From Kudoa neothunni (lineage: Eukaryota > Animalia > Cnidaria), in assembly GCA_964304625.1 (NCBI GenBank), contig OZ199839.1:10137087-10201086 (forward strand): DNA of 64,000 nucleotides, read 5' to 3'. This document shows positions 13,454 to 63,860 of this stretch, piece after piece. Below the pieces are notes generated by a model. It ran no database searches. It was given only the letters and a program-made list of their open reading frames with translations, and was not told the origin of the DNA. The translations under genes and the position numbers were made by a program. Position 1 is the first letter of the stretch, and the number at the start of each line of letters is the position of its first letter.

Positions 13454-15258
13454 TCTTTTCTAATCCATTACATATGTATTTAATTACAAAGTGTTTGTGA
13501 GAATAAAGTCAACCGTATTACATTATCATCTACAGATGCAGATACAAATACAGTGTTTACATCCATTAATTGCGAGCCTACCTTAGTGTATATTAATTTC
13601 TATGTTTAAATATGAAAATTCGAATATTTAAAAACTTGTCATTTTTTTACGCGCATAAATACGCTTGCTTGGATTTATTTCATAGACATGCACTTGCTTA
13701 AGTTTAATCCAGCGGTTTTTATCCTGGGTCCCCGAGTGATTTAGATAAAATCCGATTACAATTTTATCATCATATATTCAGTATAATTAGGTATTTTTAA
13801 ACGTTGGCATAATTTTTTAAAAGTAGAAATATATATTTGCGTCGTTGTTTCTCATCAATATATTCTATTTATTACAAAATTCCCTGTGTTGTAATTTATT
13901 TTGTAGAAAAAAACTATAAAAAAAATCATTCGATCAAAACTAAAAATTTCAAAAATATACTTTTTAATGCTGCAGAGTGTGCAATTAGATTGATTATTCC
14001 TTTTACAACAACCAACCTATTTTATCGCGAAACTAGATTTCCATGCTGGTTACCATAAAAACAAAATCACGAAATCACGTGTATGTGTGTTATTCCCTTG
14101 AATACTTTGTCAGAATCCGGTAAACTTTTTGATAAAAAGATGGTGAAAAATCTCATTAGATATTCTTTTAATGCTTATTAACTTTTTATCGTAGTAAACA
14201 CAATAATTAACAGAAATAAAGATTTTTTATGAACTTTACAATTACACATTTGCTCATGTATAAATAAAAAATCAACGTAGTTCAGTTATGGTTTTATTTT
14301 GAATATTATGAATCATTGTCTATATTTTTGTTTTGTTTTAATATAAATGTGATTCACGTATTAGTGATTAAAAATTTTTAATACATATTTAAAACAAAAC
14401 TACATAATTAATTTACATAAAAAATATTTTAATAAAATCCGGGATAGATAAATAATTCCGGTTTTTCCTTTCTATCAATTATTTTCTAAATTAAACTAAC
14501 ATTAAAATTATATACAATTCGAATTTTATTTCTTTTTATATAAAATTTGCAACAATAATTTTATATCTATTTTAGTCTGTTCACTGAAGTTATAAAATGG
14601 AACAAATGGGTAAAATATTTATATGTATGATTGGATTAGGAATTTAAACTGGATGGGGTCAGCGAGGAAAACAGGTCAATAACCACTGAGTTAATCTGTA
14701 ATGATACAAGTTTGCGTGAATTTGTTATATAGATATAGATATGCGTCTGCTGTATAGGGCGAGTGGGATTTTCGGTGACATCCTCATTTAGGGGAGAAAT
14801 TCCTAGTGCCTTTTTATCTCATTGTTTTATAATCTTGTTTGTCTTTTCTCAAAATTAAAATTGTTTTTTGTTGTTTTTTTAATTTTTGATCTAACTTTGA
14901 TAATTATTTTTTTTTTGACTTCAATAATGCAGATTCTAGACTTTGTTCAGATTTTACTTGGTTTTTAAAAATCATTTTTTATATCATTAAAATTTGAGAA
15001 ATATAGCTTTATTTCTTTTTGTTCATTTGAATTTAAAGGTAAGAAATAAATCTGAGATAGGTATTCGAGTGGAATAGAACGCTTTGGTGGATCCCCACCT
15101 CACCCTACATCAAGTAATGTGATCAATCCTAAAAATAAAATATCTGGATAATATGTAATTTCCATATTGGTATACAACTCGTGGCGATAACTGCGAGGTT
15201 TTTTTTCGTTTCAATTATTGTGCTTTAAATTAAGTTAGACCTGTTTTCTATTATCATA

Positions 15259-15600
15259 TCTACTATATATAAAAGAGAGGCGTCCGTGTGTGTAACTTTG
15301 AGTACATGCGTGCGCGGGAAATCTATTCCCTTATAGGAACAGATGTTGAAACTTTTGACCATATAGACATAATTTAAACGCTGTTTTCTGATCATTCAAC
15401 CAACATTATATGCATTTGCATTATTATTAACTGATATATAGACCATTTTATGCTTTATGCTGTATGCTTTATGCGCGCGACGAATTGGATTAAAAGGATT
15501 TATTTGTGGATTATCAAGAACATTAAATTTTTTAGGGGCCAAAGAGAATATTAACTTCTCCAGGATAAACATTAAGATCCTTAGGTAAACGAAATTATTC
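15259..15600 (+). mobile_element. Helitron-like element, 5' fragment
   Basis: A|TCTACTATATATAAAA...CCGTGTGTGT...CATGCGTGCGC...CCCTTATAG head shared with the other copies; no 3' end seen. Confidence 0.5.
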
Positions 15601-15615
15601 ATATCATATCTAATA

Positions 15616-16677
15616 TCTACTATCTACTATATATATATATATATATATATAAAGCTGAAGTGTGTGTCAGCAAGTACGCATGTGCATAAAACATTTTTCC
15701 TTATAGAGAGACATTTATGAAGTTTTGTAAAAATCATAATGTTTAAAAAAATCTTTGAATCCTTTTCACGTTACCAAGTGTTCCCAAAAGTGTTTAGAAA
15801 ATGGTGCTTTAGTCGTTTCAACGTTTGTTTAACGGATTACTTGAGTCCAAGAATTGAATTAACATTGGCTTATACCATGGTGAAGGTCGGTTGAAGTTAA
15901 CATTCTCCCTTATATGCTCTATTAAATGTCAATTAAGCGGTGCCAACTATCTTTATGTATAAGGTTGGCGTTTGTGCAAATACACTCCTTATTTGTGGAG
16001 TTTCAGCGTATAAGACTTGATAAGTATATTTTAAAGTTCTAGTAATGGTTTTAGATATGATTAAAAGTTTATATATGTTTCATGAATAGCGAAATGGTAG
16101 AGAACGTTAAAATTACATTAATTGAAGCATTAAAATTGAAATACTGCGTGCGTAGATTTCATTGAAATCGTCCGTTAAGTTTAACTTTCCGTGATTAAAT
16201 TCAGTGCAGATGGTTGCAATTTTATTTCACCAAATTACTTCAATTGTTTATGTTGGAGTTGGCGCGATTTGTAGCTGTTTATGGGAAAACGTGCGCTAAA
16301 CTTTTGCTGGGACAAGGGATAATAAGTCGAGCAATACAAATTAATTTTCTTCTATCTCCTTATATTTTTCTGTTTATTTGTCTCCCACAAATAGTGTTAG
16401 TGATAGTGATGCACAAATTTCCTGGGCCGAGCGAGAATTCGACTTTGAAAAATCCCAGATTCACAAAATAACGTTTTAAATAGCACTTTAAGGGAATTTT
16501 AATAATCCAAGGATACAAATTAAATACGACACAGATGTTAAATTACAAAGCTTACAAAAAAATTTTAATTTGATTTAATCTATAGGTTAATTTGAAATAT
16601 TAATATCTTTTTTGAATGTTATTAAGAAATTTTTCAGTGCTTATTACTCCCAAGCAATGCTGGGCAGTTCGCGCCAG
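15616..16677 (+). mobile_element. Non-autonomous Helitron-like element
   Basis: A|TCTACTAT...(TA)n AAAGC...GTGTGTGTCAG head; 3' hairpin CCCAAGCAATGCTGGG followed by GCGCCAG|T (CTAG-like end). Confidence 0.6.
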
Positions 16678-17114
16678 TATATAAAAAAGATGAATAACTA
16701 TTGAAACCGCCTTTTAAAAACACTCAGTAAATATGAGGTATAAATTTAAATTATATTGTTTCCTTGAAAAAAAGGATAAAAATATATTTCCATTAATAAC
16801 TTAAACCAAGTTTTCTTCCAAAAGATGAGAAAACTTTTTCTACTTAATTTTACAGAAACAGTTGTAAGATTTAGGTAGTAACAACCATTAAACACAAATC
16901 TTTAAGACCTTTATAGGGTATAGGGTGGAAACTAGGCTATAATTAAACATTTGATATTTTAGTTTTAAATCTATCAAAATATTAAAAATTATATTTTCGA
17001 AATTATACTAGAACCGATTCACTTAATATTAAAAGAAAACTATTTAATGAATTTGAATTGGATCAACATATTTTTGCAGATGATAAAAAATAAACAACTA
17101 CTTATAGAAAACAA

Positions 17115-44828: not shown

Positions 44829-45078
44829 TCAAATGTCATATCCATATTGTCGCATGCATCTTTTGTGCGCTTCCACTATATCTTTACATTTCTCAGCTCC
44901 ATGGTAAAGAATGCTATAATCATAAATTATGCTAACTGTCTATTTCACAACGAAGATCTAACCATTCGTCTCGATACTTCCTTGTTTCGGGACATGCACA
45001 ACAAATCTTTGGCTTATCTGGGTCGTGGGAGTAGTCTGCATCAAATTTATCAAACTTAGGAATGTCCTCAAGGTTCAT
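44829..45078 (-). CDS. COX17: Cytochrome c oxidase copper chaperone (66 aa)
   Basis: Exons 45078-44963 and 44913-44829 give MNLEDIPKFDKFDADYSHDPDKPKICCACPETRKYRDECILYHGAEKCKDIVEAHKRCMRQYGYDI; CCxC plus twin CX9C. Confidence 0.95.
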
Positions 45079-45435
45079 TTCCAAGATAAATAAATTTGGA
45101 TTAATTTCGTGTGTTGACGAGTTATCCCGAGTTTCAAATTTGTTATTCAAACCCCTATTTATAATTTATTTAATAAAACAATTTTAATTTAGAAATAACA
45201 CTTGAATGAACTTTTTTATATTTGGTAAAAACCAAGGCAGTATTTGGATTAGAATGTTGATTTCTATAGAAATTATCCAAACAATTTTGTAATTCCTTAG
45301 ACGAATTAAAATTTCAAAATATCCAATTTTTTATACGATATATACTTCATATATGGTATATAAACATGAGGTTTTAAACAAGTCTGTGACATCATGTGTA
45401 AACAAATTTTTTAGTCGATAATTAATCTCCTATAT

Positions 45436-46183
45436 CAGTGGTGGGCACAACTTTTGGTTCTACGGGTCACATTGGCTCATTACAAAAGCTTGGAGGGCCG
45501 CATTGTTGATTAAGTGTTTTAGGAGAACTTAAATATCTATTGGTGGTTTTTCTGACATTTTTGGTACAATAAAAAAGTTAGTGTATAAGTTAATTTAAAA
45601 AGGAACTAAATAATTTTTAAAAAATAGAAATTTGGTGATCGGCATACTATTGCAAGTTTCGATCGGAATAATAGATTTTATCGCTTTTCAAATATGTTGA
45701 TAAATTAGATTTTTTTAAACTCGGCGAATGAAATGGAAAATATGGATATGGTTCTTATTGCGTCAAACCTAATTTATGTATGAGTATCGCATCCTCATGT
45801 TTTTCTGCTATTTAGTTATTTTTAGATTCTTTTTGTTGTGAATTGAATCTCGTGTACCAGTTTTTTTCAATGATTGATGACATATTATTTTGTTTTCAGG
45901 GCGTATTAGATCTTACCTCATTCACGTTTATATATGATAATCATAGATACGATGCAAGCATAGGTAAAACATCAAATCAGATAATAAAATCGCGTAAAAT
46001 TAAAGTTTACAAATCCAAAATATTCATCAAAAGGCTGTTAGTTTATTTTTTTATGGAAGATAAATGCTGTCTTAATGTTTCTAGATTTTGAAAACATGTA
46101 CATACTCGCGCAAATTTCAGCCTCATAAACCCGCCCACGGGCCGTACAAAATTTCTTCGGGGGCCTCACTTTGCCCAACACTG
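45436..46183. mobile_element. 748-bp hAT-type MITE, copy 1
   Basis: TIRs CAGTGGTGGGCA / TGCCCAACACTG; direct repeat of 51655-52402 with about 3 substitutions seen by eye. Confidence 0.9.
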
Positions 46184-46189
46184 TAACTG

Positions 46190-46866
46190 TACTATATAAA
46201 GCAAGCAGGTAATCCGTGTGTGTGTCAGTGTGTATACATTTTTCATTCTTTATAGAGAGATATATCGCTCCATTTGAGCACATATATGGAAAGATAAAAT
46301 TTTTTTTTAATGTAGAAAAATACGTAAAAAATTATAAAAGGTTTGCATCCTGAAAAATGACTAAAAACATTTTCACGTGATATGAGAGGTATGATTTCAG
46401 CATTTATGCTAACATATAGGTCATTTCGTTAAAGTTATAAAAAGTTAATTTTATGTTTATCGTAATGTTTTATTTTACTTTAAAATTGCTGAAAAGTAAT
46501 TTATTAATTGAAATAGTTCAAATAATTAAGGTAATATTACGTTATGTAGCCATGCATTAATATGAAATTCATTTATTGATGTTTAACAAGATTAGTCCTA
46601 TTTATGTGGTATGATTTAGAGATTACTACAAACAACAAGGAGAAAATCGATTTTTAGGAGGTCTAAAGAGGAAATTTTAAGCGCTCAGTAGTGTTCATTC
46701 GTTTTTAAAAATATTAAATAAGGTTCATGCGTCCAATGAGTTAAATAAATCATACGTTAATGGGGAAATCTTTGTATTATTTATCAAAATACTCTAAATT
46801 TACTTTGAACTTCAACTGACTTCGACCGGGCAAGGAAACCCACGCGAAGCGGGACTTTTGCGCTAG
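46190..46866 (+). mobile_element. Helitron-like element missing its terminal TC
   Basis: Starts TACTATATAAAGC..CCGTGTGTGTGTCAG; ends with hairpin CCCACGCGAAGCGGG then GCGCTAG|T. Confidence 0.7.
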
Positions 46867-48433
46867 TTAAATATAAATGATTCTACAAAATTATAGTTGA
46901 AAACAGCTCTCAGAGGAGAGTTTCTAGGATTAAGAATTTATAATATGCAAACGTACATCCCATTTTAGATTAAATTTTACCGTTCCAATAACCTCCGCGA
47001 TACAAAATTTATATTTTCTAATTACTTTTGAAATTGTTTTCGGTACTGTTTAAAATAACCAATTCTTGTATTTCTTCGCTTAAATCATGCTGGAAACTAC
47101 ATATATAAAATATTTAAGTGGGAATTTTTATTTCAATTCAGATTTTTAGCTGAGCTAATTTCAAAAACGAAAGAAAATTTTAATTTTTAGAAATAAAATA
47201 ATACAAACTTTAAATGTATTTATAATAAAACTATTTCTAAAACGTTATTTTTTATAGTCGAACTAACGATTAATTGAATATACAATAAATATCGATATTG
47301 CGATGTTTGATATAGGGTATTTGGCATTTTTTTAATTTCTGTAATCAGCATTGTAAAATTTTTCCTATATTTTATCTTTTAATTTAACTTATATACGAAA
47401 AATATGAAATAACATTCAGTTATACATTCGAACGTCCGGGATTGTGAGAGAAAATTTTTTTGGTGAAAAGTTGAAATTATTCAATATTATGAATCATTTA
47501 GATCAATCTTAAAGACCAATAAATGGCTGTAGAACGCCATAGAATATCATCGATTCCGTTATTTTGAGTTTTATTCAAATAAGGATAGATTATTCTTCTC
47601 TGAATAGATTTTCGTCAATACATTGTTTAAATCAACTCATATGTTGCTACTATACGTAAAGTGACTATAAATGAAAAATTATCCTAATTTATATTGAGTT
47701 TACTACCGGATAATGTCAAAATAAGAAAAAAATATATTTATAAGTTTTTGATCATCAATAAGGCAGAACTTTGGCTGTTGTTCTTAAAATCACCAATTTC
47801 ATTTGAATAAAATATTCATTTAAAATTTTAAGACTCTTTTGTTATAAAAATTCACTTACATCTGAAAAGTGGGAGCGTTCATAATAGTATTGTTTACGAC
47901 TAAGTGGAACAATTTTATGAGGTAATTAGCAGCTATAACAAAGAAAACAGTAAATCCTGGCGCGGACGCTCCTTTTTATGTACAATGCACTCAATGAATA
48001 TATGCAATAAAGATTGAGTGAAATTAAAAGGAAATGAAACAATAAACAGATCATCATCTCACGATTGACTGCTTTATTTACAGAAAAAATTGGCGGATTT
48101 CTTCGACCATCTTGATACTTTAAAAAATATTGATCAAAAGTTCGCGAAAGGTATATGAAAAGTTCTTATACTGTAAGAACGATATTCTTCACATTTATAA
48201 TTAAATAATACAATCAGAATAAACAATTTTTTTATTAAAAAATAAAACATTTACTCTTTTAGCGCACACGAAAAAATCTATATTCGGCGGTAAAAACTCA
48301 GGCCTCGATTTTTTATACAATATCGAGACCTTATCGTGTATTTAAATGACCAATCAAAAACTATCAGGCTAATAAAAAATTTCTTTTTAATAATTTATAG
48401 ATTTATTGTGTGATCTTTTATAAATGCCCGAGT

Positions 48434-51400
48434 CTAATTTTTCTTTTTGAAAACCACAAATCCGATCGCACCTGCAATCATAATTCCAATAATCGCAACC
48501 ACTATTATTCTAAAATATTTTTATTTCAAACGTAAATAAGTTTTCTATCCATACATGATAAAGGTTTTAGAACTAAATAATAGATTAAGTAATTATTTAA
48601 CAATTAAACAAACCTTGAGCTGCTTTTTGCACCTAATAATAATATTTAAAAATATTATTATGTAAATCATGTTTTACCTTGTTCAATAACAGCCTCACCA
48701 TAAATTGAAGAATCCTTAGAGCCGTAAACAATCAAATGATAACTGTTACCATCTGCTATCCTGTTAATTGTAAACGACTTGCAATACGGAAGTGTTTTGC
48801 ATCCAGTATCTCTTGACTTCATGCATTTTTTTACTATTGGCATCGATTTGGCACTTGAATTAAGTAGTTTCCACTTGCATCTTGATTTGTCGTTGAGACT
48901 AGAGGGAAGTGTATTTTCAATATTGAATACTTCACCATCTCTTGTTATAGTTACAAATATTATTTTTTCCCTGTCTGTTGGGTTTCCTCTTGGAGCCGCT
49001 ATTTATTTACGTTAATATTTATATTATAATATATCTTAATTACTGGGTAATATAGTGATTTCTTCGGGTGAAGATTTTTCCACGGCAGTGACCAACACTT
49101 TATATTCTTCTTTTGCATCATAATCATCGAATAAAATCGAACTACATAATGGAGGCGATGCACATGTGTTTGAACTTTGAGGAGCTGCTGTAGTAGTAGT
49201 TGTAGTAGTAGTAGTAGTTGTTGTTGTCGTTGTCGTTGTAGTAGTAGTATCAGATTCAGTTGTTTCAGCTACATTTGTTTGAATATCGCCAGTTCTTGCA
49301 ATATTTGACTTAATAACTGTTGATTTAAGATTAGAACGTTGAATGGTGCTAGCTTCATCTTGATTAGGGCTAGGTTCGGTCTCAGCTGGTGTGTTTGGTG
49401 GAGTCTCAGGAGTTTCCGGAGCAGTTGATGGTATCTCAGGAGCCTCACACGTATACACGTTATCGAATTTGTCATTATTCTTTATTTGGATTGTATAATG
49501 ACAAATGGCTTCTGGAGTTTTTTTCGATAATTGAACATTCAACTCCAAACCTCTCTCAGTATATATTTGTGAAATTCTCAATCTTGCCAAATCTTTTCAT
49601 AAATTATATATAAATCATTTGAAAAATATACTTGTTGTAACATTTTCATAAACATGCTCTTTATAATCTTTGTCAGCAACGACTTTAATATCATAGCGAG
49701 TGTTTGGTTCGAGATCAATGATGGTTATTGACTCGCTACACCTTCCTCTACAAGGGTTCGTCTCGGTGCATGTAGCAACATAAAATGTATTTTTTCCTGT
49801 TGGACTTATGTAATACTCACAGTTTGGCTCATCTTTCTTTTGTCCTCCTGTTCCTGCAATGGCTGTTAACGTAGATGTTGACTCTGTTTTAGTTGGGGCT
49901 GTTGGTATAAAGACATTATTGCTACCTTTTTTTTCTTTTTAAAATTTATAGCTTTAATCATTTTTTGTTATTAATTATTTACCTGTCCTTATAAGTATTT
50001 GTTCTTTAAATTGGGTTGGCTCACTTAAACCAGATAAAATTTCTATAATATAAGGTTTACCCTCGGCAAGCTTTTCAATCGCCACGTTTGTGCAGTCCGT
50101 TTTGCAGGTGGTACCTGAAGAACCTTGAGTCCCAGAGCTGCAATCTGTATTGGTGGAAGAGGATGGTTTTATTTTGTCAGCAGCATAATGTTTGATTGTA
50201 CAAGTAGTAAACTTGGTAACTCCTGTAGGATTAAAAAGTGCCACATTCAATGACACACCTTGATATGTATATGCAGACAACAATCCAACTCCTGTCTCTG
50301 CAATTGCTATATATATGAATTAAAATATTTTATTATTTACAATATAGATACCAAATTTGTTCTGGATAAATCCGTCTAAACTAGCATCAGCAGTTTGTGT
50401 CAGCTCATGATTTCTGGTTTGAATTAAAACTTTGTATATTTCTTTTGGTTCATTTACGGTAAGTTCAATGTCCTTACACAGTGCATAACACTTTCCATCG
50501 GTATTACCACATTTAGACTCAAATGACTGACTAGTTCCTGCGTTTTTTCCATCCTTAATACTGAAGATGCATATTTCTGACGATAGCATTGAACCTGTGA
50601 ATTTAATTAGCAACTTTTTAGTATCTGTCTGTTTTGTAACATAATATTGAGGTTCGTAAATAGCCATGTTTTTCTTCATATATGTATTTGGCATATGATA
50701 AAAGAAACTGGGATAATTCGTACATCTCATCTCATAATGAGGAATTAATAGATCGAACTCCAAAGCGTCAACTGTGTTATCCGCATCGCATGTTGCTCCT
50801 TTTGTACCACTCTTGAATTCAGCATCTTTGTAAAAGATAGAGCAATCAACTGGAGTACACGTTTTTGCGGAAAGTTTTAGTTTTTTATTCTCACCAGATA
50901 TTGTTACTTGAGGATTTACTATTAATGCTAAAATTTTAAATAAATAATTAATTCGAATTTTTATTTGATTACGTGTTGACAACCCAAACACTTTTCCCCC
51001 TCTTGGGTGATTAGTCCCTTGGACGTTAGATTTATCTGTATCAGCTTTTACGTATATGTATTTTGTTCTCGGCGAAAGACTGTTAAAAGGAACATCGCTT
51101 TCTGGTTTGATACATTCAATTACGCATTTATCAGATACGGATGTATCATATCCAGGACAACTTGGGATTTCGCCAAAAGCAGCTGCAGTTGTTGGACTTG
51201 CGAGAGTTGTCGCTTCATTAGATATCATAATACGGCAAATTTTACCAGCTGCATATTCTGTGCCACCAAGTGTACGCTTAAATTGATTTTTGTTACTAGC
51301 GCTATGATAAACAATCTGGTAAGTCAATGTAGCCTCCGGCGCAGATGCAGCCTGAGGTGCTTGACTTGCTCTTACATAAAGTAATTTAAGAAAAACTAAT

Positions 51401-51470
51401 ATAAATTAAAGTAACTACAATAAAATAAATATATACTAAGAAAGTAACACAGCAATTGAATCTTTAACAT
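48434..51470 (-). CDS. Cys-rich multi-module type I membrane protein, copy B (intact)
   Basis: Ten exons splice in frame. Signal peptide MLKIQLLCYFLIFLKLLYVRA, six module exons bounded by phase-1 introns, a 20-Thr tract (49189-49248), 19- and 18-nt microexons, TM IIIVVAIIGIMIAGAIGFVVF and tail KKKN*. Confidence 0.85.
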
Positions 51471-51654
51471 GATTAGTAGTATTACAGTAATCAATGGTTT
51501 GAGCCGAATACATGAATATCATAATATGATCAAAACTTTTCGGATGCAAGTGAATACGAATCAAAGATATTTCAGTAATTAACTCGATAATATTTATTTA
51601 ACGATAAAATGGTTAATATGAGATTAATTATTAACGTGCAATTATCTACTATAT

Positions 51655-52402
51655 CAGTGGTGGGCACAACTTTTGGTTCTACGGGTCACATTGGCTCATT
51701 ACAAAAGCTTGGAGGGCCGCATTGTTGATTAAGTGTTTTAGGAGAACTTAAATATCTATTGGTGGTTTTTCTGACATTTTTGGTACAATAAAAAAGTTAG
51801 TGTATAAGTTAATTTAAAAAGGAACTAAATAATTTTTAAAAAATAGAAATTTGGTGATCGGCATACTATTGCAAGTTTCGATCAGAATAATAGATTTTAT
51901 CGCTTTTCAAATATGTTGATAAATTAGATTTTTTTAAACTCGGCGAATGAAATGGAAAATATGGATATGGTTCTTATTGCGTCAAACCTAATTTATGTAT
52001 GAGTATCGCATCCTCATGTTTTTCTGCTATTTAGTTATTTTTAGATTCTTTTTGTTGTGAATTGAATCTCGTGTACCAGTTTTTTTCAATGATTGATGAC
52101 ATATTATTTTGTTTTCAGGGCGTATTAGATCTTACCTCATTCACGTTTATATATGATAATCATAGATACGATGCAAGCATAGGTAAAACATCAAATCAGA
52201 TAATAAAATCGCGTAAAATTAAAGTTTACAAATCCAAAATATTCATCAAAAGGCTGTTAGTTTATTTTTTTATGGAAGATAAATGCTGTCTTAATGTTTC
52301 TAGATTTTGAAAACATGTACATACTCGCGCAAATTTCAGCCTCATAAACCCGCCCACGGGCCGTACAAAATTTCTTCGGGGGCCTCACTTTTCCCACCAC
52401 TG
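51655..52402. mobile_element. 748-bp hAT-type MITE, copy 2
   Basis: TIRs CAGTGGTGGGCA / TTCCCACCACTG; near-identical to 45436-46183 and in the same orientation. Confidence 0.9.
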
Positions 52403-55149
52403 TCCTATATCAATATGTATGTGCAAGAAACTTTTTAAAAGTTAACCTGATGATTGTGCAATGATCCTATCTATAATTTGTGTTTATTTTTTATATACAT
52501 GTGGGTGGATTTTTTATTTAATTCATTACATCATAATAAGAGGAGTGTGTGCATGAATATCGTGTATATTTTGTGTACATGCGCAAATTCATAAATTTTG
52601 GCGCTTTTTTTTAATTAAATATTAAACTAAGTCTAGCATTTAATTTATTAAGAAGATTTTAATTTTTATATATTTAAACGGTTTATTAAGCTAGTTTAGA
52701 GCGTCAGGAAATTAAACAAATAATAAATATATTAATTAATTAATTAAACTCTTTATTAATCGTTAAAAAATTTGGCACAAATTTTTTTTTCAGAGTGATC
52801 ACATTTATTTAATTTCTTTAAGAATTTACTCTAAATTTTAATCATAAAATTATGTTGAAACAATCTATAGTTCACCTCTTTGATTGTTTAACGTTGTCGG
52901 TTCCATAGAGAAACATTATATAGTAAATTAAATTAAACTATAAAGTATGAAACTAATATAAAATAACAAAATATAATGATAACTCTTAAATATGTTATTA
53001 GTGAAGGTTAAATTGCAGAATAGCGGCCGTAACCCATATCAGCGACAACATACAAAAACGAACCTGTTGAATGTTTTATTATTTAGTATTTATCAGTGTT
53101 GCGTCCCCAGTAGGGTAACTTTGGCAACAGCTATTTGTCAGCATAATAATATTGGTTGTAATCTATTATATAAATATATTTAACTCCTAGTTACTCGCGA
53201 TTATTTCAACAGGAGCTATACCATCAATTAAGCCGGTTCGAGTAAAGCATGTTTTGTGTATTCTAAAATTGAAGTCGGTAAACTCTGAGTTTGATGGATT
53301 ATCACAATCTATCCTTAGCGATTGCCTAGTGTATCAATTCCTTTTCTATAAGGCTATAAGGCTATAAGACTATAAGACTAAGAATTTCATATTTAATATA
53401 ATCATTAGTTAACAAATTGCAGCAAATGCATAACGTTAATATCACAAATAATTAATTGGATGATATTCAGACAGTACTACGATTAAATATTCAACAAATA
53501 TCACATTAATTTGATTTAAAAATTTAGGAATAAGGTCCGAACAAATTATAATCTTTATTCGGTAAGTGCGGTCATTATTCTGCATTTTAATCTAAAATAA
53601 TGTTGGCATATAATAAAAAATATCAATAAACCATTCATATTTTACTAGTTATTTTTTGCAATAATTAATGGAATACTCAATGAGAGAATATCTAATAAAA
53701 AATTTTAACTAATTTATTTCGTTAATTAATAATAGTAATAATAATAATATTTGAATTTCTTATTAAGATATGAAAGGATAAACGCACGATTTAGCTGATA
53801 ATTTTGATATAGATATATTTTTTTATTATTTTTTCGATCGTTGAATAATTTCTCGCTTATTACAAATAAAAGCTAACTAGATTAAGGTTTATTTAATAGC
53901 GTTATATCTGATGGAATATATCTGTTTAAATTTAACTTTAGAAAGTTGGATTAAAACAATGTTATTAATTTCAATACAAACCATCATACATTATTAACAT
54001 TGAATAGTTGTTTTATAAAGATATAATGTTTGTGGCAGAATCTCAGTATATTAGAGTTAAGAGAAAATTGATTTTGGTTGAGACATGAACATGACTCACC
54101 TTTTATTACGATTCTAGGGGACTATTAAATTTTTCGTTTCGATAAAAGAATTTTTTCTATCAATTTCACCAGTCCTATCATTAAACATTAATCTTTTTAT
54201 AGTATTTATTTATGCTTCTATATTGGATATAGTTACATTTATATAATACATATTTTATATTAAAAAATTCTGTATGAGCACTTAAAAGTAAAAGTTCGAT
54301 ATATCGTTGTCTCCTAATTAGAGAAAATTTATAAATTTTATTTTTTCAATATTCAATTAATTTCTTATGTTATATATTATATTTAATGGATAAATGACGG
54401 TATTATTTAAATATCACCTTCAATTAATAAGTTCAACCTAATTTAAAAATTTAAAATGGATATGATAAGTAAATATAAAAATATGGAATAGTAACTGGGC
54501 ATATATTTAATATATTAATTAAATGCATTATAAAATATGAAATAAAAGTACACTACCACGCAAAGATGGTAATTTGGGGTTTTAAAATTTTAACGAATTA
54601 TTTTTGCCAATCAAAATAATCTAATTTGAGTATTTTGTTACAGAGATTGATTGTACATTTTTATAATTAAATATCAGTTTTGTTTAATTATAAAAATTCA
54701 TCATTTACGTAAATTTAATAAATATACGCTACCTACAATATTTTTGAGATATATTTATTTAAAAATGATAATAGTTCGTTGGACCCCTTTAGTATAAGAG
54801 AATTATAAATTTACTTATAAAATTTTAAAAAAAAGCATATTTACATAATGATCACAATGTTCATATTCAAACCGGATTGTTTCGTATAATGATAAGACTT
54901 ATTATACCAACATATAAAATTTTCCACATTTTGGTATATATCTTCGTAGGATGATGATGTAAATATGTAATATAAGTGTTATTAATTTTAATAAAACTTT
55001 TCATTTAATAAAAACCAACAAATTTATAAATATTATTCATTATAAAATAAAACGGGTACAATTAACACTAAAATATATTGCAAATAGTGATTTAATACAA
55101 AAATAATATTGTTTCAATGAGATAAATAAGTTATTGATAAGATGGATCC

Positions 55150-60897: not shown

Positions 60898-63860
60898 TTA
60901 TGCTTGATTCTTCTTGTAACCAAAGTATAATCCAACGATTACGACAACAATAACAATTGGTACCACAATTCCAATTATCCTAAATGGTAACTTACTCAAA
61001 CTCGACCATATTTAGTGTTAATACATGCTGGTGCTCGCCCTATAAATCAATGACAATAAATATTATTTTTACTCAATGTTACCTTGATTGATTGGAAGTC
61101 TCTCCTATATTTATGATTAAATTAATTATTAATTATTGTTAAATACCTTGTTTTATTCGCCCAACACCTTTAACTGTAGGATATTTGGAGTGAATAACCG
61201 TTAAATGATAATCACTAGTATCGTTTACGCCTTCAATTGTGAATGACTTGCATGTAGGTAGTTTACAACCACCAACTCCACTTGTAACACATTTTTTCAC
61301 TAATTGGTAAAGAAGGATCGTTCAAATTTCTCAACATCCATCGACACCTTGAATTTTCATTCTTTTCTTTTGGAAGCAATGATGTAATTTTAAGGTGTCA
61401 CCAACTCTTTCGATAATCACTGTGATTTGTTTGTCCAATTCCGCAGGATTCTCAGGTGGAATATCTATTTGTATGTGATGTATTAGAACTTTATATAATT
61501 TGGTTGATAAATATTGTACTTTTGGGGGTATCGATGGTAATTTCTTCCGATCTTTCCACAGCCGTAACCAACACTTGATATTCTTTGTCTGCTTCGTAAA
61601 CCCTCACCGATAATTATGCTACTGCATAATGGTGGTTCACTACATGGTGGGAATTTAGAATGAGTAGTCACAGGAGGAGTGGCTGATGCCGGAGTCGTCG
61701 TAGATGAACTTTGAGATGTATCACCTCCGCTACTTGCTCTGGCCACTCTATTACTGTGATAATTAGTCTCACTGATCAACCGAGATTGTTTTGTTTCTGG
61801 ATCATTGGTAGACTGGTCAACATTGACGGTAGGTGGTTGGCCTGCGAAGGAGATGGACAACAGTTGGGCAGGAATAAACTACATCTGAACTAATTCCATT
61901 TTTAACTTTGAGTTTATAGCTACAAACTGCTTCTGGATATGCAGTTGTTAATCTTCCAACAACCTGAAATCCTTTGTCTAGGAATTTGTGGGATAGAGTG
62001 AGGGTTGAAAAGGCTAATAAACGTAAATTAAATGTGATTGCGATAGCTCATTTTTACTAGTTGAAACATTCTCAAATATTTTTTCACCATAATCTTTATT
62101 TGAAACAACTTTGATATCATAATTTGTTTTTGGGTGTAAATTTATCAATTTCTGTGTATCCTTGCAAAATCCTCTGCATGGGTTACTATCTTCACATTCT
62201 GCTTCTACAAACATGTGTTACCTGTTTTACTGATGTAGTATGAACATGTTGGTTGGGTAGTTGTTGTTTCCACTGGTCCGTCGATTGCCTTGATTGTTGC
62301 AGTTACGTCATTTGTCGTAGGTGTTGTAGAGACAAAGTCAGATCCTGTATTTTTAACTAAAGAAATTTAACGAACGTAATAAATCTATTCCATTACTTGT
62401 TTTCAAAAACAAATATTCTTTGAAGCCATTGTAATTATCCATATTTGTTGGTGAAATTTCAATTATATATGCTTTTCCTGAAGCCAATTCATTTATTGCG
62501 GCGTTTGATGAACAGTCTGTTCCGCAATCATTACTTGAGCATTTGGCGGCAGTTCCATCATTTGGTCTGAGTTTATCAGCTGGAAATGCTTTAATGTACA
62601 AGTAGTAAATTTTTTGACATCTTCACCATCTGGATTATAAAGGGATCGTTTAAATGTTACACCGGTAGTAGAATGTGCAGTTAAAAGAGAACTTGCGTTT
62701 GCATCCTCCACAATAGCTAAAATTATTAAACATTTCTGTAGAACTGATAAAAACTATACCAAATTTGCTCTCTTCATAACCTTCAAAGGCAGAATTTGTT
62801 TCTTCTAGCTTATGATGCCTGGTTTGAATTAATATTTTCACGATTGGCTTGGATAGATACGGCAAGTGCCAATTCCACATTATCACATGGTGCGTAACAA
62901 TTTTTCCCAGCTCCACCACCGCACGATGATGCATAAGTGGCTGTTTCATCACTAGCATTGTCTACTGCATCCTTTATATGAAATAGGCATATTTCCGATG
63001 GAAATGCATTTTGGAATTTAAGCATATAATTTTTCTTTTGAGTGTCGCCATGCTTATAGGTCACATAGTATTGAGGTTTATAAACGTCAATATTTTTTTT
63101 TCATATAAGAATTTGGCATATTGTAGAAAAAACTTGGGTAGTTCGTGCATTTCATCTCATAATGAGGAATCATTGGATCAAAATCAACTGTATTTTCTTG
63201 ATTCTCGACTACACACGTATCACCAGCGGTACCGGCTGCGTAGGTGACGCCCTTGTATAAAATTGGACATGCTACTTTAGGGCATGTTTTAGTTGCGACC
63301 TTTAACTTCTTGTCGGCATCAGTAGATATTGTAACTATTGGATTCACCAGAAGTGCTATTCATAATTTATTTTATGTTACTATTCAATTTAGCATACGAG
63401 TTGACAACCCAAAAAACGTCTCCGCCATTGTTTTTTTCTTTTATTGCGGTAAATTCCTGGCCAGAAAACACATAGATGTATTTTGTTCTTGGTGATAGAG
63501 CATTAAATGCCAGTTTAATATCATTATCGGAACATACACGGAGGCATTTATCGTTTCCATCAGGAGTATCACTATTAGAGCATGGGGTTATTTGTTCAAT
63601 ATCGGTACCATCTTCCTTTTCTTTTCTTATTAGACATTTTTTTCCATTGGCATCATAGACCGATCCGGATAAAGTGAGATGTACTTTATCTCCATCTGCA
63701 ATGCTATATGAGAGTTGTTTATCAGGTTTGGTAGACACATCTGGAGTTGCATGCACAGATTCCTTATTTATGACTACAAATGATTAAATACAATGATAAT
63801 TTTAATAAAATTACAGGAAAATATAATCAAAACATTAAATAAGGCAATAGGAACCTTCAT
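60898..63860 (-). pseudogene. Cys-rich membrane protein copy D: tandem duplicate of C with multiple frameshifts (pseudogene or consensus errors)
   Basis: Colinear with C at a ~5.75 kb offset, including introns and 3' flank. Single-base indels near 63413, 63095, 62855, 62584, 62217, 61852, 61599 and 61389. TM IIGIVVPIVIVVVIVGLYFGY, tail KKNQA*. Confidence 0.7.

Follow-up and report, generated by a model that had tools for sequence, protein, structure and literature searches.

A surface-protein gene between twin MITEs with exchanged target-site duplications in Kudoa neothunni: a gene duplication that appears to combine a Helitron circle with a hAT element

How does a complete multi-exon gene come to lie between two near-identical MITEs (miniature inverted-repeat transposable elements) whose target-site duplications (TSDs) are exchanged, so that the outer flanks match each other and the inner flanks match each other? 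The question is raised by gene B of the cnidarian Kudoa neothunni, a surface-protein gene located beside its relatives C and D. The stretch analysed, called the window here, is 64,000 nucleotides long (G000:C2:10137087-10201086, C2 being the contig that holds it) and belongs to a four-contig assembly of 40.3 Mb with ~29% GC and short introns. Four sequencing runs contain this DNA, all of one sample whose species label is shared by other indexed runs with next to none of it, which suggests a parasite or symbiont sequenced together with its host. Judged from its sequence, the unit is a transposon-bounded gene duplication, neither recent nor amplified. Gene B appears to have been copied as a circle closed at a Helitron end and then inserted by way of a hAT MITE, in a relay of two transposons that may help to spread a very large surface-gene family in this genome.

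Architecture of the unit

When the window sequence was read again, the order X-MITE-Y...Y-MITE-X was found to be exact, with X = TCCTATAT and Y = TACTATAT; the twin-MITE geometry, the coordinates and the 8-mers given in the preliminary description of this DNA all hold. The unit measures 6975 bp from outer terminal inverted repeat (TIR) to outer TIR, and no second copy of it was found in a search of the genome. In the list below, the slash in A/T marks the point of Helitron insertion.

45420-45435, forward strand: microhomology of 15/16 bases between the host flank and the donor Helitron head with its TSD (51640-51654)
45428-45435, forward strand: left copy of the outer 8-mer X (TCCTATAT), in agreement with the central-TA target consensus of the MITE family
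45436-46183, forward strand: MITE1, 748 bp with 12-bp TIRs, an internal-deletion derivative of a SPIN/Buster-like hAT element
46180-46191, forward strand: tandem duplication of the 6 bp ACTGTA (46180-46185 and 46186-46191) at the joint of the MITE1 end and the TSD
46190-46197, forward strand: left copy of the inner 8-mer Y (TACTATAT), an old TSD identical to Helitron nucleotides 3-10
46190-46866, forward strand: non-autonomous Helitron H, from nucleotide 3 to the CTAG end, of a copy lineage shared with the Helitron upstream of paralog L033
46863-46867, forward strand: permutation joint, Helitron CTAG to the T of an A/T site in the gene B 3' flank, unoccupied in paralog L032 (840/841)
46867-48433, reverse strand: 3' flank of gene B
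~48434-51470, reverse strand: gene B, predicted multi-exon type I membrane protein, entirely inside the unit
51645-51654, forward strand: Helitron head (A/TC followed by Y), ~175 bp upstream of the gene B ATG; the site is empty in L032, L034 and L036
51647-51654, forward strand: right copy of the inner 8-mer Y (TACTATAT), abutting MITE2
51655-52402, forward strand: MITE2, 99.6% identical to MITE1
52403-52410, forward strand: right copy of the outer 8-mer X (TCCTATAT), whose junction with the single-copy flank is bridged by read contigs
44829-45078, reverse strand: COX17 (context, outside the unit), PF05051 above cut-off, CC motif intact

Between the two MITEs there are 3 differences in 748 sites, at element positions 230, 738 and 743; two of them fall within the last 11 bp. 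The remaining copies sampled are 6.8-9.8% away from MITE1, and no pair of independent insertions in the sample is closer than 4.2%. Since the twins are far closer to each other than any such pair, they share a local history. An active burst of MITEs was rejected as the source of their identity, as no young copies were found and the others are distant. The six bases that separate MITE1 from Y belong to a tandem duplication spanning the end of the element and the first two TSD bases, which means that MITE1 originally abutted Y.

Throughout the family, the TIRs are 12 bp long, 11/12 complementary and begin with CAG, and the 8-bp TSDs have a near-invariant central TA (T at 17 and A at 18 of 18 sites, in positions 4-5); paired TSDs were found at 13 other full copies, several with one mismatch. 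Two elements, L023 and L025, have the two ends of the MITE and, between them, broken frames with a PF18658 Spin-doc zinc finger; their relatives are named GTF2IRD2-like. These longer parent elements support the derivation of the MITE from a SPIN/Buster-like hAT element, in line with the hAT origin and the 8-bp TSDs first proposed. Remnants of hAT transposase are abundant in the genome. Two identical 4.6-kb hAT-derived copies, L026 and L027 (G000:C2:4797131-4828414), lie in inverted orientation ~22 kb apart and are possibly the arms of a recent inverted duplication.

It had been feared that a frequently used target site could produce the matching 8-mers by chance. This is not supported: the chance that a new insertion site equals X is ~4e-4 (estimated from 18 sites), and the Y pair is not fortuitous because Y is one old TSD, found intact around the same insertion at the paralogous locus L012/L033.

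The four exon stretches of gene B that were checked are all open. The predicted protein is hydrophobic at its start and in a C-terminal segment, and has Cys-rich beta modules and a Thr-rich stalk. With one exon as query, at least 150 full-length relatives were found in the genome (497 candidates); exon-by-exon searches found no homologue outside this genome and no Pfam family. An atlas search pointed to an fn3 cluster (score 0.75), which is a lead only; the predicted model of one exon is poor (pLDDT 45). One exon is 88% identical to paralogs L032 and L033, 1.4 and 4.2 Mb away, versus ~52% to neighbour C, which bears out the suggestion that gene B arrived from elsewhere and means that its position beside C and D needs no special cause. 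The alternative of an old tandem member of the C/D array that received two independent MITE insertions was rejected: the native flanks are missing, with only ~175 bp of native upstream DNA retained in the unit, and the kin are distant.

Two members of the family, paralog L034 (~3621) and gene D (window 62850-63100), are probable pseudogenes by a frameshift in the large exon. Read contigs depart from gene B at 47732, 48595, 48855, 49602 and 49837 into long unrelated sequence that matches no locus compared, and which may represent partial gene copies elsewhere or insertion alleles.

A circular permutation closed at a Helitron end

The ~680 bp to the right of MITE1 are a non-autonomous Helitron, other copies of which begin A/TC followed by Y and end CTAG/T. 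The termini of several copies and paralogous empty sites display the features of Helitrons: a 5' TC, a 3' CTAG, an A/T target and no TSD. A short GC stem forms at the 3' end, with a stability no higher than that of shuffled sequences. As Y corresponds to Helitron nucleotides 3-10, the MITE is nested in the 5' end of the Helitron and Y is its old TSD.

The L012/L033 locus (C2:6.01 Mb) holds a gene B paralog in the unbroken order gene-TC-Y-MITE-Y-Helitron; the left flank of the MITE is there that of MITE2, and its right flank matches that of MITE1. In the window, the Helitron CTAG is joined to the gene B 3' flank at 46866/46867, at a site that reads A/T and is empty in L032. The upstream A/T site is empty in L032, L034 and L036, where native upstream DNA continues that is missing from the window. 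Taken together, the order at L033, the joint in the window and the empty paralogous sites indicate that the window segment is a circular permutation of gene, Helitron and MITE, 6219 bp in length. We therefore regard a circle, or a circular permutation of the unit relative to the donor-type locus, as likely on these alignments. On the map of this putative circle, L033 runs from position 1669 round to 1278 and lacks only 390 bp, the joint among them; on its other side, L033 adjoins a different Helitron, whose 3' end lies there at another A/T site. The copies at L032, at L033 and in the window stand in a near star at mutual distances of 8-9%, and the window and L033 Helitrons are sisters (100/98), 7.1% apart versus ~12% for unrelated copies. 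A single circle opened twice, in the window and at L033, and derived from an L032-like mother allele, would explain both the permutation and the near star.

Two other origins of the joint have to be considered. A local Helitron hop may have produced a Helitron-gene-Helitron tandem, yielding an identical window sequence. The joint also lies near the end of an old repeat, in some other copies of which TAG is found at this place too, so that a 3-base microhomology may have acted here instead of Helitron end joining. Helitron circles and head-to-tail joints are known intermediates (PMC5876387). A head-to-tail joint of the same family is present at C2:5528890 (C2:5528869-5528911), with the 3' end directly on the 5' end, as in a circle or concatemer junction.

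The entry of a circle carrying gene B and one MITE had been proposed from the outset. The circular permutation agrees with this proposal; what has to be revised is the part given to the MITE, which does not define the unit. As the joint that closes the putative circle consists of a Helitron 3' end, and the MITE is nested in the 5' end of that Helitron, it is the Helitron that delimits the unit. The view that near-identity of the twins implies a recent event is not supported: the unit is 8% away from its sisters, a near-identical donor was not found, no independent MITE pair is closer than 4.2%, and every full-domain match among the 29 matches to the Rep domain (PF14214) in the genome contains stops. 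Near-identical twin elements thus need not date an event. As for amplification, the unit is single-copy at this locus.

Other Helitrons were noted. The one at window 15258-16684 belongs to a second family and is related to the Helitron abutting L033. In the promoter of another paralog (L035, 4713-5836), there is a 1.1-kb chimeric Helitron that has the head of one family and the tail of family H, at a distance of ~60 bp from the L033 insertion site; the promoter looks like a Helitron hot spot.

How the unit may have entered

The unit sits in single-copy DNA, ~350 bp upstream of the likely COX17 ATG, and genome searches found no empty-site paralog of the outer insertion site. The 15/16 match between the host flank and the donor Helitron head exceeds all 153 pairs of independent MITE sites (simulated P ~2e-4). 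There is in addition a 12-base inverted match between the host flank (45418-45429) and the gene B upstream region (51620-51631); each 12-mer is unique in the window, and the match is AT-rich and possibly due to chance.

The chain of events that we tentatively favour combines a Helitron-closed circle, a crossover into a resident MITE and a later conversion. The sequences show a Helitron copy with a MITE in its nucleotides 3-10 attached by its 5' TC to an A/T site upstream of gene B. The 3' CTAG of the same Helitron, which is seen joined to the T of a second A/T site ~1.6 kb downstream of the gene, would have been placed there by Helitron end joining, thereby closing a 6219-bp circle of gene, Helitron and MITE. 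In one variant of this step, two nicks in a single target strand would be linked by Rep/Hel to the two ends of the Helitron, with the mother locus left untouched; in another, a local Helitron hop would be followed by the popping out of the direct repeat. The MITE of the circle would then have met a resident, differently derived MITE upstream of COX17, and crossover or gap repair would have generated the order X-MITE-Y...Y-MITE-X. Conversion between the repeats, 6.2 kb apart, would finally have replaced the sequence of MITE1 by that of MITE2, with only the last 11-17 bp of MITE1 spared.

The composition of the twins fits several of these steps. Their left 420 bp group with the donor-type MITE (L012; tree support 89/91), while their right 330 bp are at least 9.4% away from every sampled copy, the right half of L012 being ordinary. 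Both twins are thus the same chimera, donor-type on the left and foreign on the right, rather than reciprocal chimeras. Crossing over with a resident copy would be expected to leave MITE2 as a chimera of this kind. Of the three positions at which the twins differ, two are in the MITE1 tip, the region that would be spared under the conversion step; at element position 738, the T of MITE2 is also present in the older copies L024 and L028 and in L003, and MITE1 has the G of the donor. The conversion must be added because a single crossover predicts two reciprocal chimeras and the twins are near-identical. Among exchanged TSDs generally, ectopic recombination leaves reciprocal chimeras and hybrid element insertion leaves identical copies (PMC2775673).

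Several points weigh against this chain. A near-complete conversion across 5-9% divergence has to be assumed and, by the criterion just cited (PMC2775673), near-identical copies at face value favour a transposase. No homogenisation took place between the two Helitrons of locus L038, which are 4.7 kb apart. The MITE family is a patchwork in general, so that the foreign right half is no proof of a resident copy, and the tree support of 89/91 is below the starred threshold. The 15/16 match of the host flank stays a coincidence. Among the read contigs, from one sample, neither an allele with a single MITE at X nor a circle was seen. The preliminary description had offered a crossover or a cointegrate: the crossover with a resident MITE is retained as the tentative choice, although the twins are not the reciprocal chimeras it should leave, and the cointegrate, in which a resident MITE attacks the circle and Y is a new TSD, was rejected, as Y predates the event, flanking the same insertion at L012/L033, 7% diverged.

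A transposase acting on a composite of two MITEs is possible, if on balance unlikely: one MITE would have supplied the left end, and a sister copy the right end, of a 6975-bp unit inserted as a whole. X would be a newly made hAT TSD, no resident MITE would have existed, and the source would be a circle in replication, a concatemer from rolling-circle synthesis or a tandem of Helitron, gene and Helitron. The boundaries lie exactly at the outer TIRs, with an exact 8-bp duplication that has a central TA; the twins would be identical from birth, and identity of the copies has been published as the mark of hybrid element insertion (PMC2775673). Alternative transposition with two elements is established for maize Ac/Ds (PMC4270019), and the abundance of hAT transposase remnants also agrees. 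For a recent event, however, one would look for a near-identical donor gene or Helitron twin, an excision footprint in some Helitron head, and young MITE copies; none was found, and both parent elements seen have broken frames. For an old event, two conversions are needed (one for the foreign right half and then one for the homogenisation of the twins) rather than one, and the flank match is again a coincidence. That match is best accommodated by microhomology-guided copying, in which a fork stalled, or a DNA end broken, at the host site would pair with the donor Helitron head through the 15/16 bases, copy ~1.12 turns of the circle (or of a tandem) and return through the 7/8 match of Y and X, so that X would be a microhomology and not a TSD. 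No other model covers the flank match (P ~2e-4), the identity of the twins and the 8-bp duplication together, and animal Pack-TIRs commonly show template switching with microhomology (PMC8277862). We nevertheless think it quite improbable: the better return point (15/16) precedes MITE2 and would yield one MITE, the foreign right half is left unexplained, and the P value is post hoc and comes from 18 sites.

Still less probable is a route by Helitrons only. A first Helitron, with its MITE, would read through its end, carry gene B to a second Helitron and insert at A/T; the left flank of MITE1 would be the first Helitron head with one substitution, and the second Helitron would later have been deleted at the MITE end. 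The left flank does read A/TC with 7/8 of the Helitron head, the loci L038 and C1:3.33 Mb resemble composite Helitrons, and composite rolling-circle transposition has been proposed for duplications linked to DINE-1 (PMC4067079). Against this, the same A-to-C change would have had to arise independently at both outer 8-mers (estimated at a few in 100,000), together with a clean deletion. It is, finally, hardly credible that the assembler created the structure by looping a separate gene-B unit through the MITE or by merging two MITE sequences. The read evidence consists of short-read style contigs of one sample over a 6-kb stretch excluding the left outer junction, and none of these records spans the whole unit, as such an artefact would require. 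On the other side, the assembly has four contigs, and the interior of the unit is unique (at most 91% identical to other loci). One read contig bridges 52262-52740 (MITE2, X and the right flank) with no difference and no break at X, which gives no sign of a common empty allele. A second one begins at 52362, precisely 30 nucleotides ahead of the twin difference at element position 738, a branch indicating that both twins are present in the reads. The depth over the unit, a check suggested at the outset, is, for unit-specific contigs, about that of the flank (a rough estimate) with no excess, which is a sign against a high-copy circle.

Recurrence and known systems

The layout of a Helitron tail, a gene and a Helitron head is found again elsewhere. 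At L038 (468-5210; G000:C2:8464278-8469020), a gene of the family lies between a Helitron 3' end and a 5' end, without a MITE. The segment common to L038 and the mother-like locus L037 starts approximately at the Helitron CTAG and ends exactly at the Helitron TC; L037 lacks both Helitrons and its flanks match nothing near L038. The two L038 Helitrons are 11.6% apart. At C1:3.33 Mb (C1:3328835-3332692), a family gene (C1:3329778) is, by coordinates alone, flanked by a Helitron tail and a Helitron head of like orientation that are 3.9 kb from each other. Helitron H is found within 1.5 kb at 5/8 loci of the gene B subfamily versus 0/27 control MITE loci, and a listed Helitron end lies within 5 kb of ~15 of 150 listed family genes (counted by eye) versus ~6 expected, an excess that could reflect a shared preference for repeat-rich regions.

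A more general reading, which we consider unlikely, would be that non-autonomous Helitrons routinely copy whole surface-protein genes by joining both their ends to two A/T nicks around the gene. With equally low probability, the circle would be freed without marking the mother locus and would re-enter through whatever repeat it carries, a hAT MITE here and a Helitron at L038. If true, this would be an undescribed, inside-out route of capture and a main engine of a surface family of several hundred members in what is probably a parasite or symbiont. It touches on two open questions, whole-gene pickup by Helitrons and the seeding of dispersed germ-line duplicates by circles. Mother locus, intermediate and product are rarely documented side by side; the subfamily offers element-free loci (L032 and L037), two openings of one putative circle (the window and L033) and parallels (L038 and C1:3.33 Mb). 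Should the pattern hold over the at least 150 family members, it would provide a testable dispersal route for surface-protein genes.

Macrotransposition is known for maize Ac/Ds, and bacterial composite transposons and insertion sequence (IS) cointegrates have the geometry X-IS-Y...Y-IS-X. The window shares this geometry with the bacterial cointegrates, but it involves a eukaryotic cut-and-paste family and its Y is an older TSD. As in the window, the hAT termini of two nearby Ac/Ds copies could move the intervening DNA, with an 8-bp TSD outside (PMC4270019). In the window, by contrast, the permutation has split a single old insertion, giving the inner TSD pair, the elements are non-autonomous and the role of a transposase is putative. 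Galileo of Drosophila buzzatii likewise has two copies with exchanged TSDs at the ends of a rearranged segment, and the same two candidate routes (PMC2775673). The window copies differ in being in direct orientation, in bracketing an inserted, permuted duplicate and not an inversion, and in being near-identical instead of reciprocal chimeras.

In wine-yeast region B, the copies found at separate loci represent one circle opened at different points, as seems to be the case for the window and L033 (PMC3053389). The breakpoints of region B are without repeats and its insertion is by end-joining, whereas the circle of the window would close at a Helitron terminus and enter at a MITE. Duplication through circular intermediates is also known for cattle KIT and tilapia vasa. 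Helitron capture, composite rolling-circle transposition and DINE-1 breakpoints resemble the window in having gene segments bounded by Helitron ends at A/T (PMC4067079, PMC5876387). Here, however, both ends come from one Helitron copy and enclose the gene inside-out, in the order tail-gene-head; the mother locus is free of elements, and on the outside the unit is delimited by hAT TIRs instead of TC and CTAG. Pack-TIRs, like the unit, hold host sequence between TIRs with an outer TSD, in single copy (PMC8277862); the unit has two complete MITEs and a whole multi-exon gene, not a fragment inside one element. Each part of the scheme (exchanged TSDs, composite hAT moves, Helitron capture, circular intermediates) is therefore known. 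Their combination, with the recurring tail-gene-head layout and element-free mother loci, was not found described in the literature searched.

On the COX17 side of the unit, a further upstream ATG at 45392, 35 bp from the unit, may open 5' exons of COX17.

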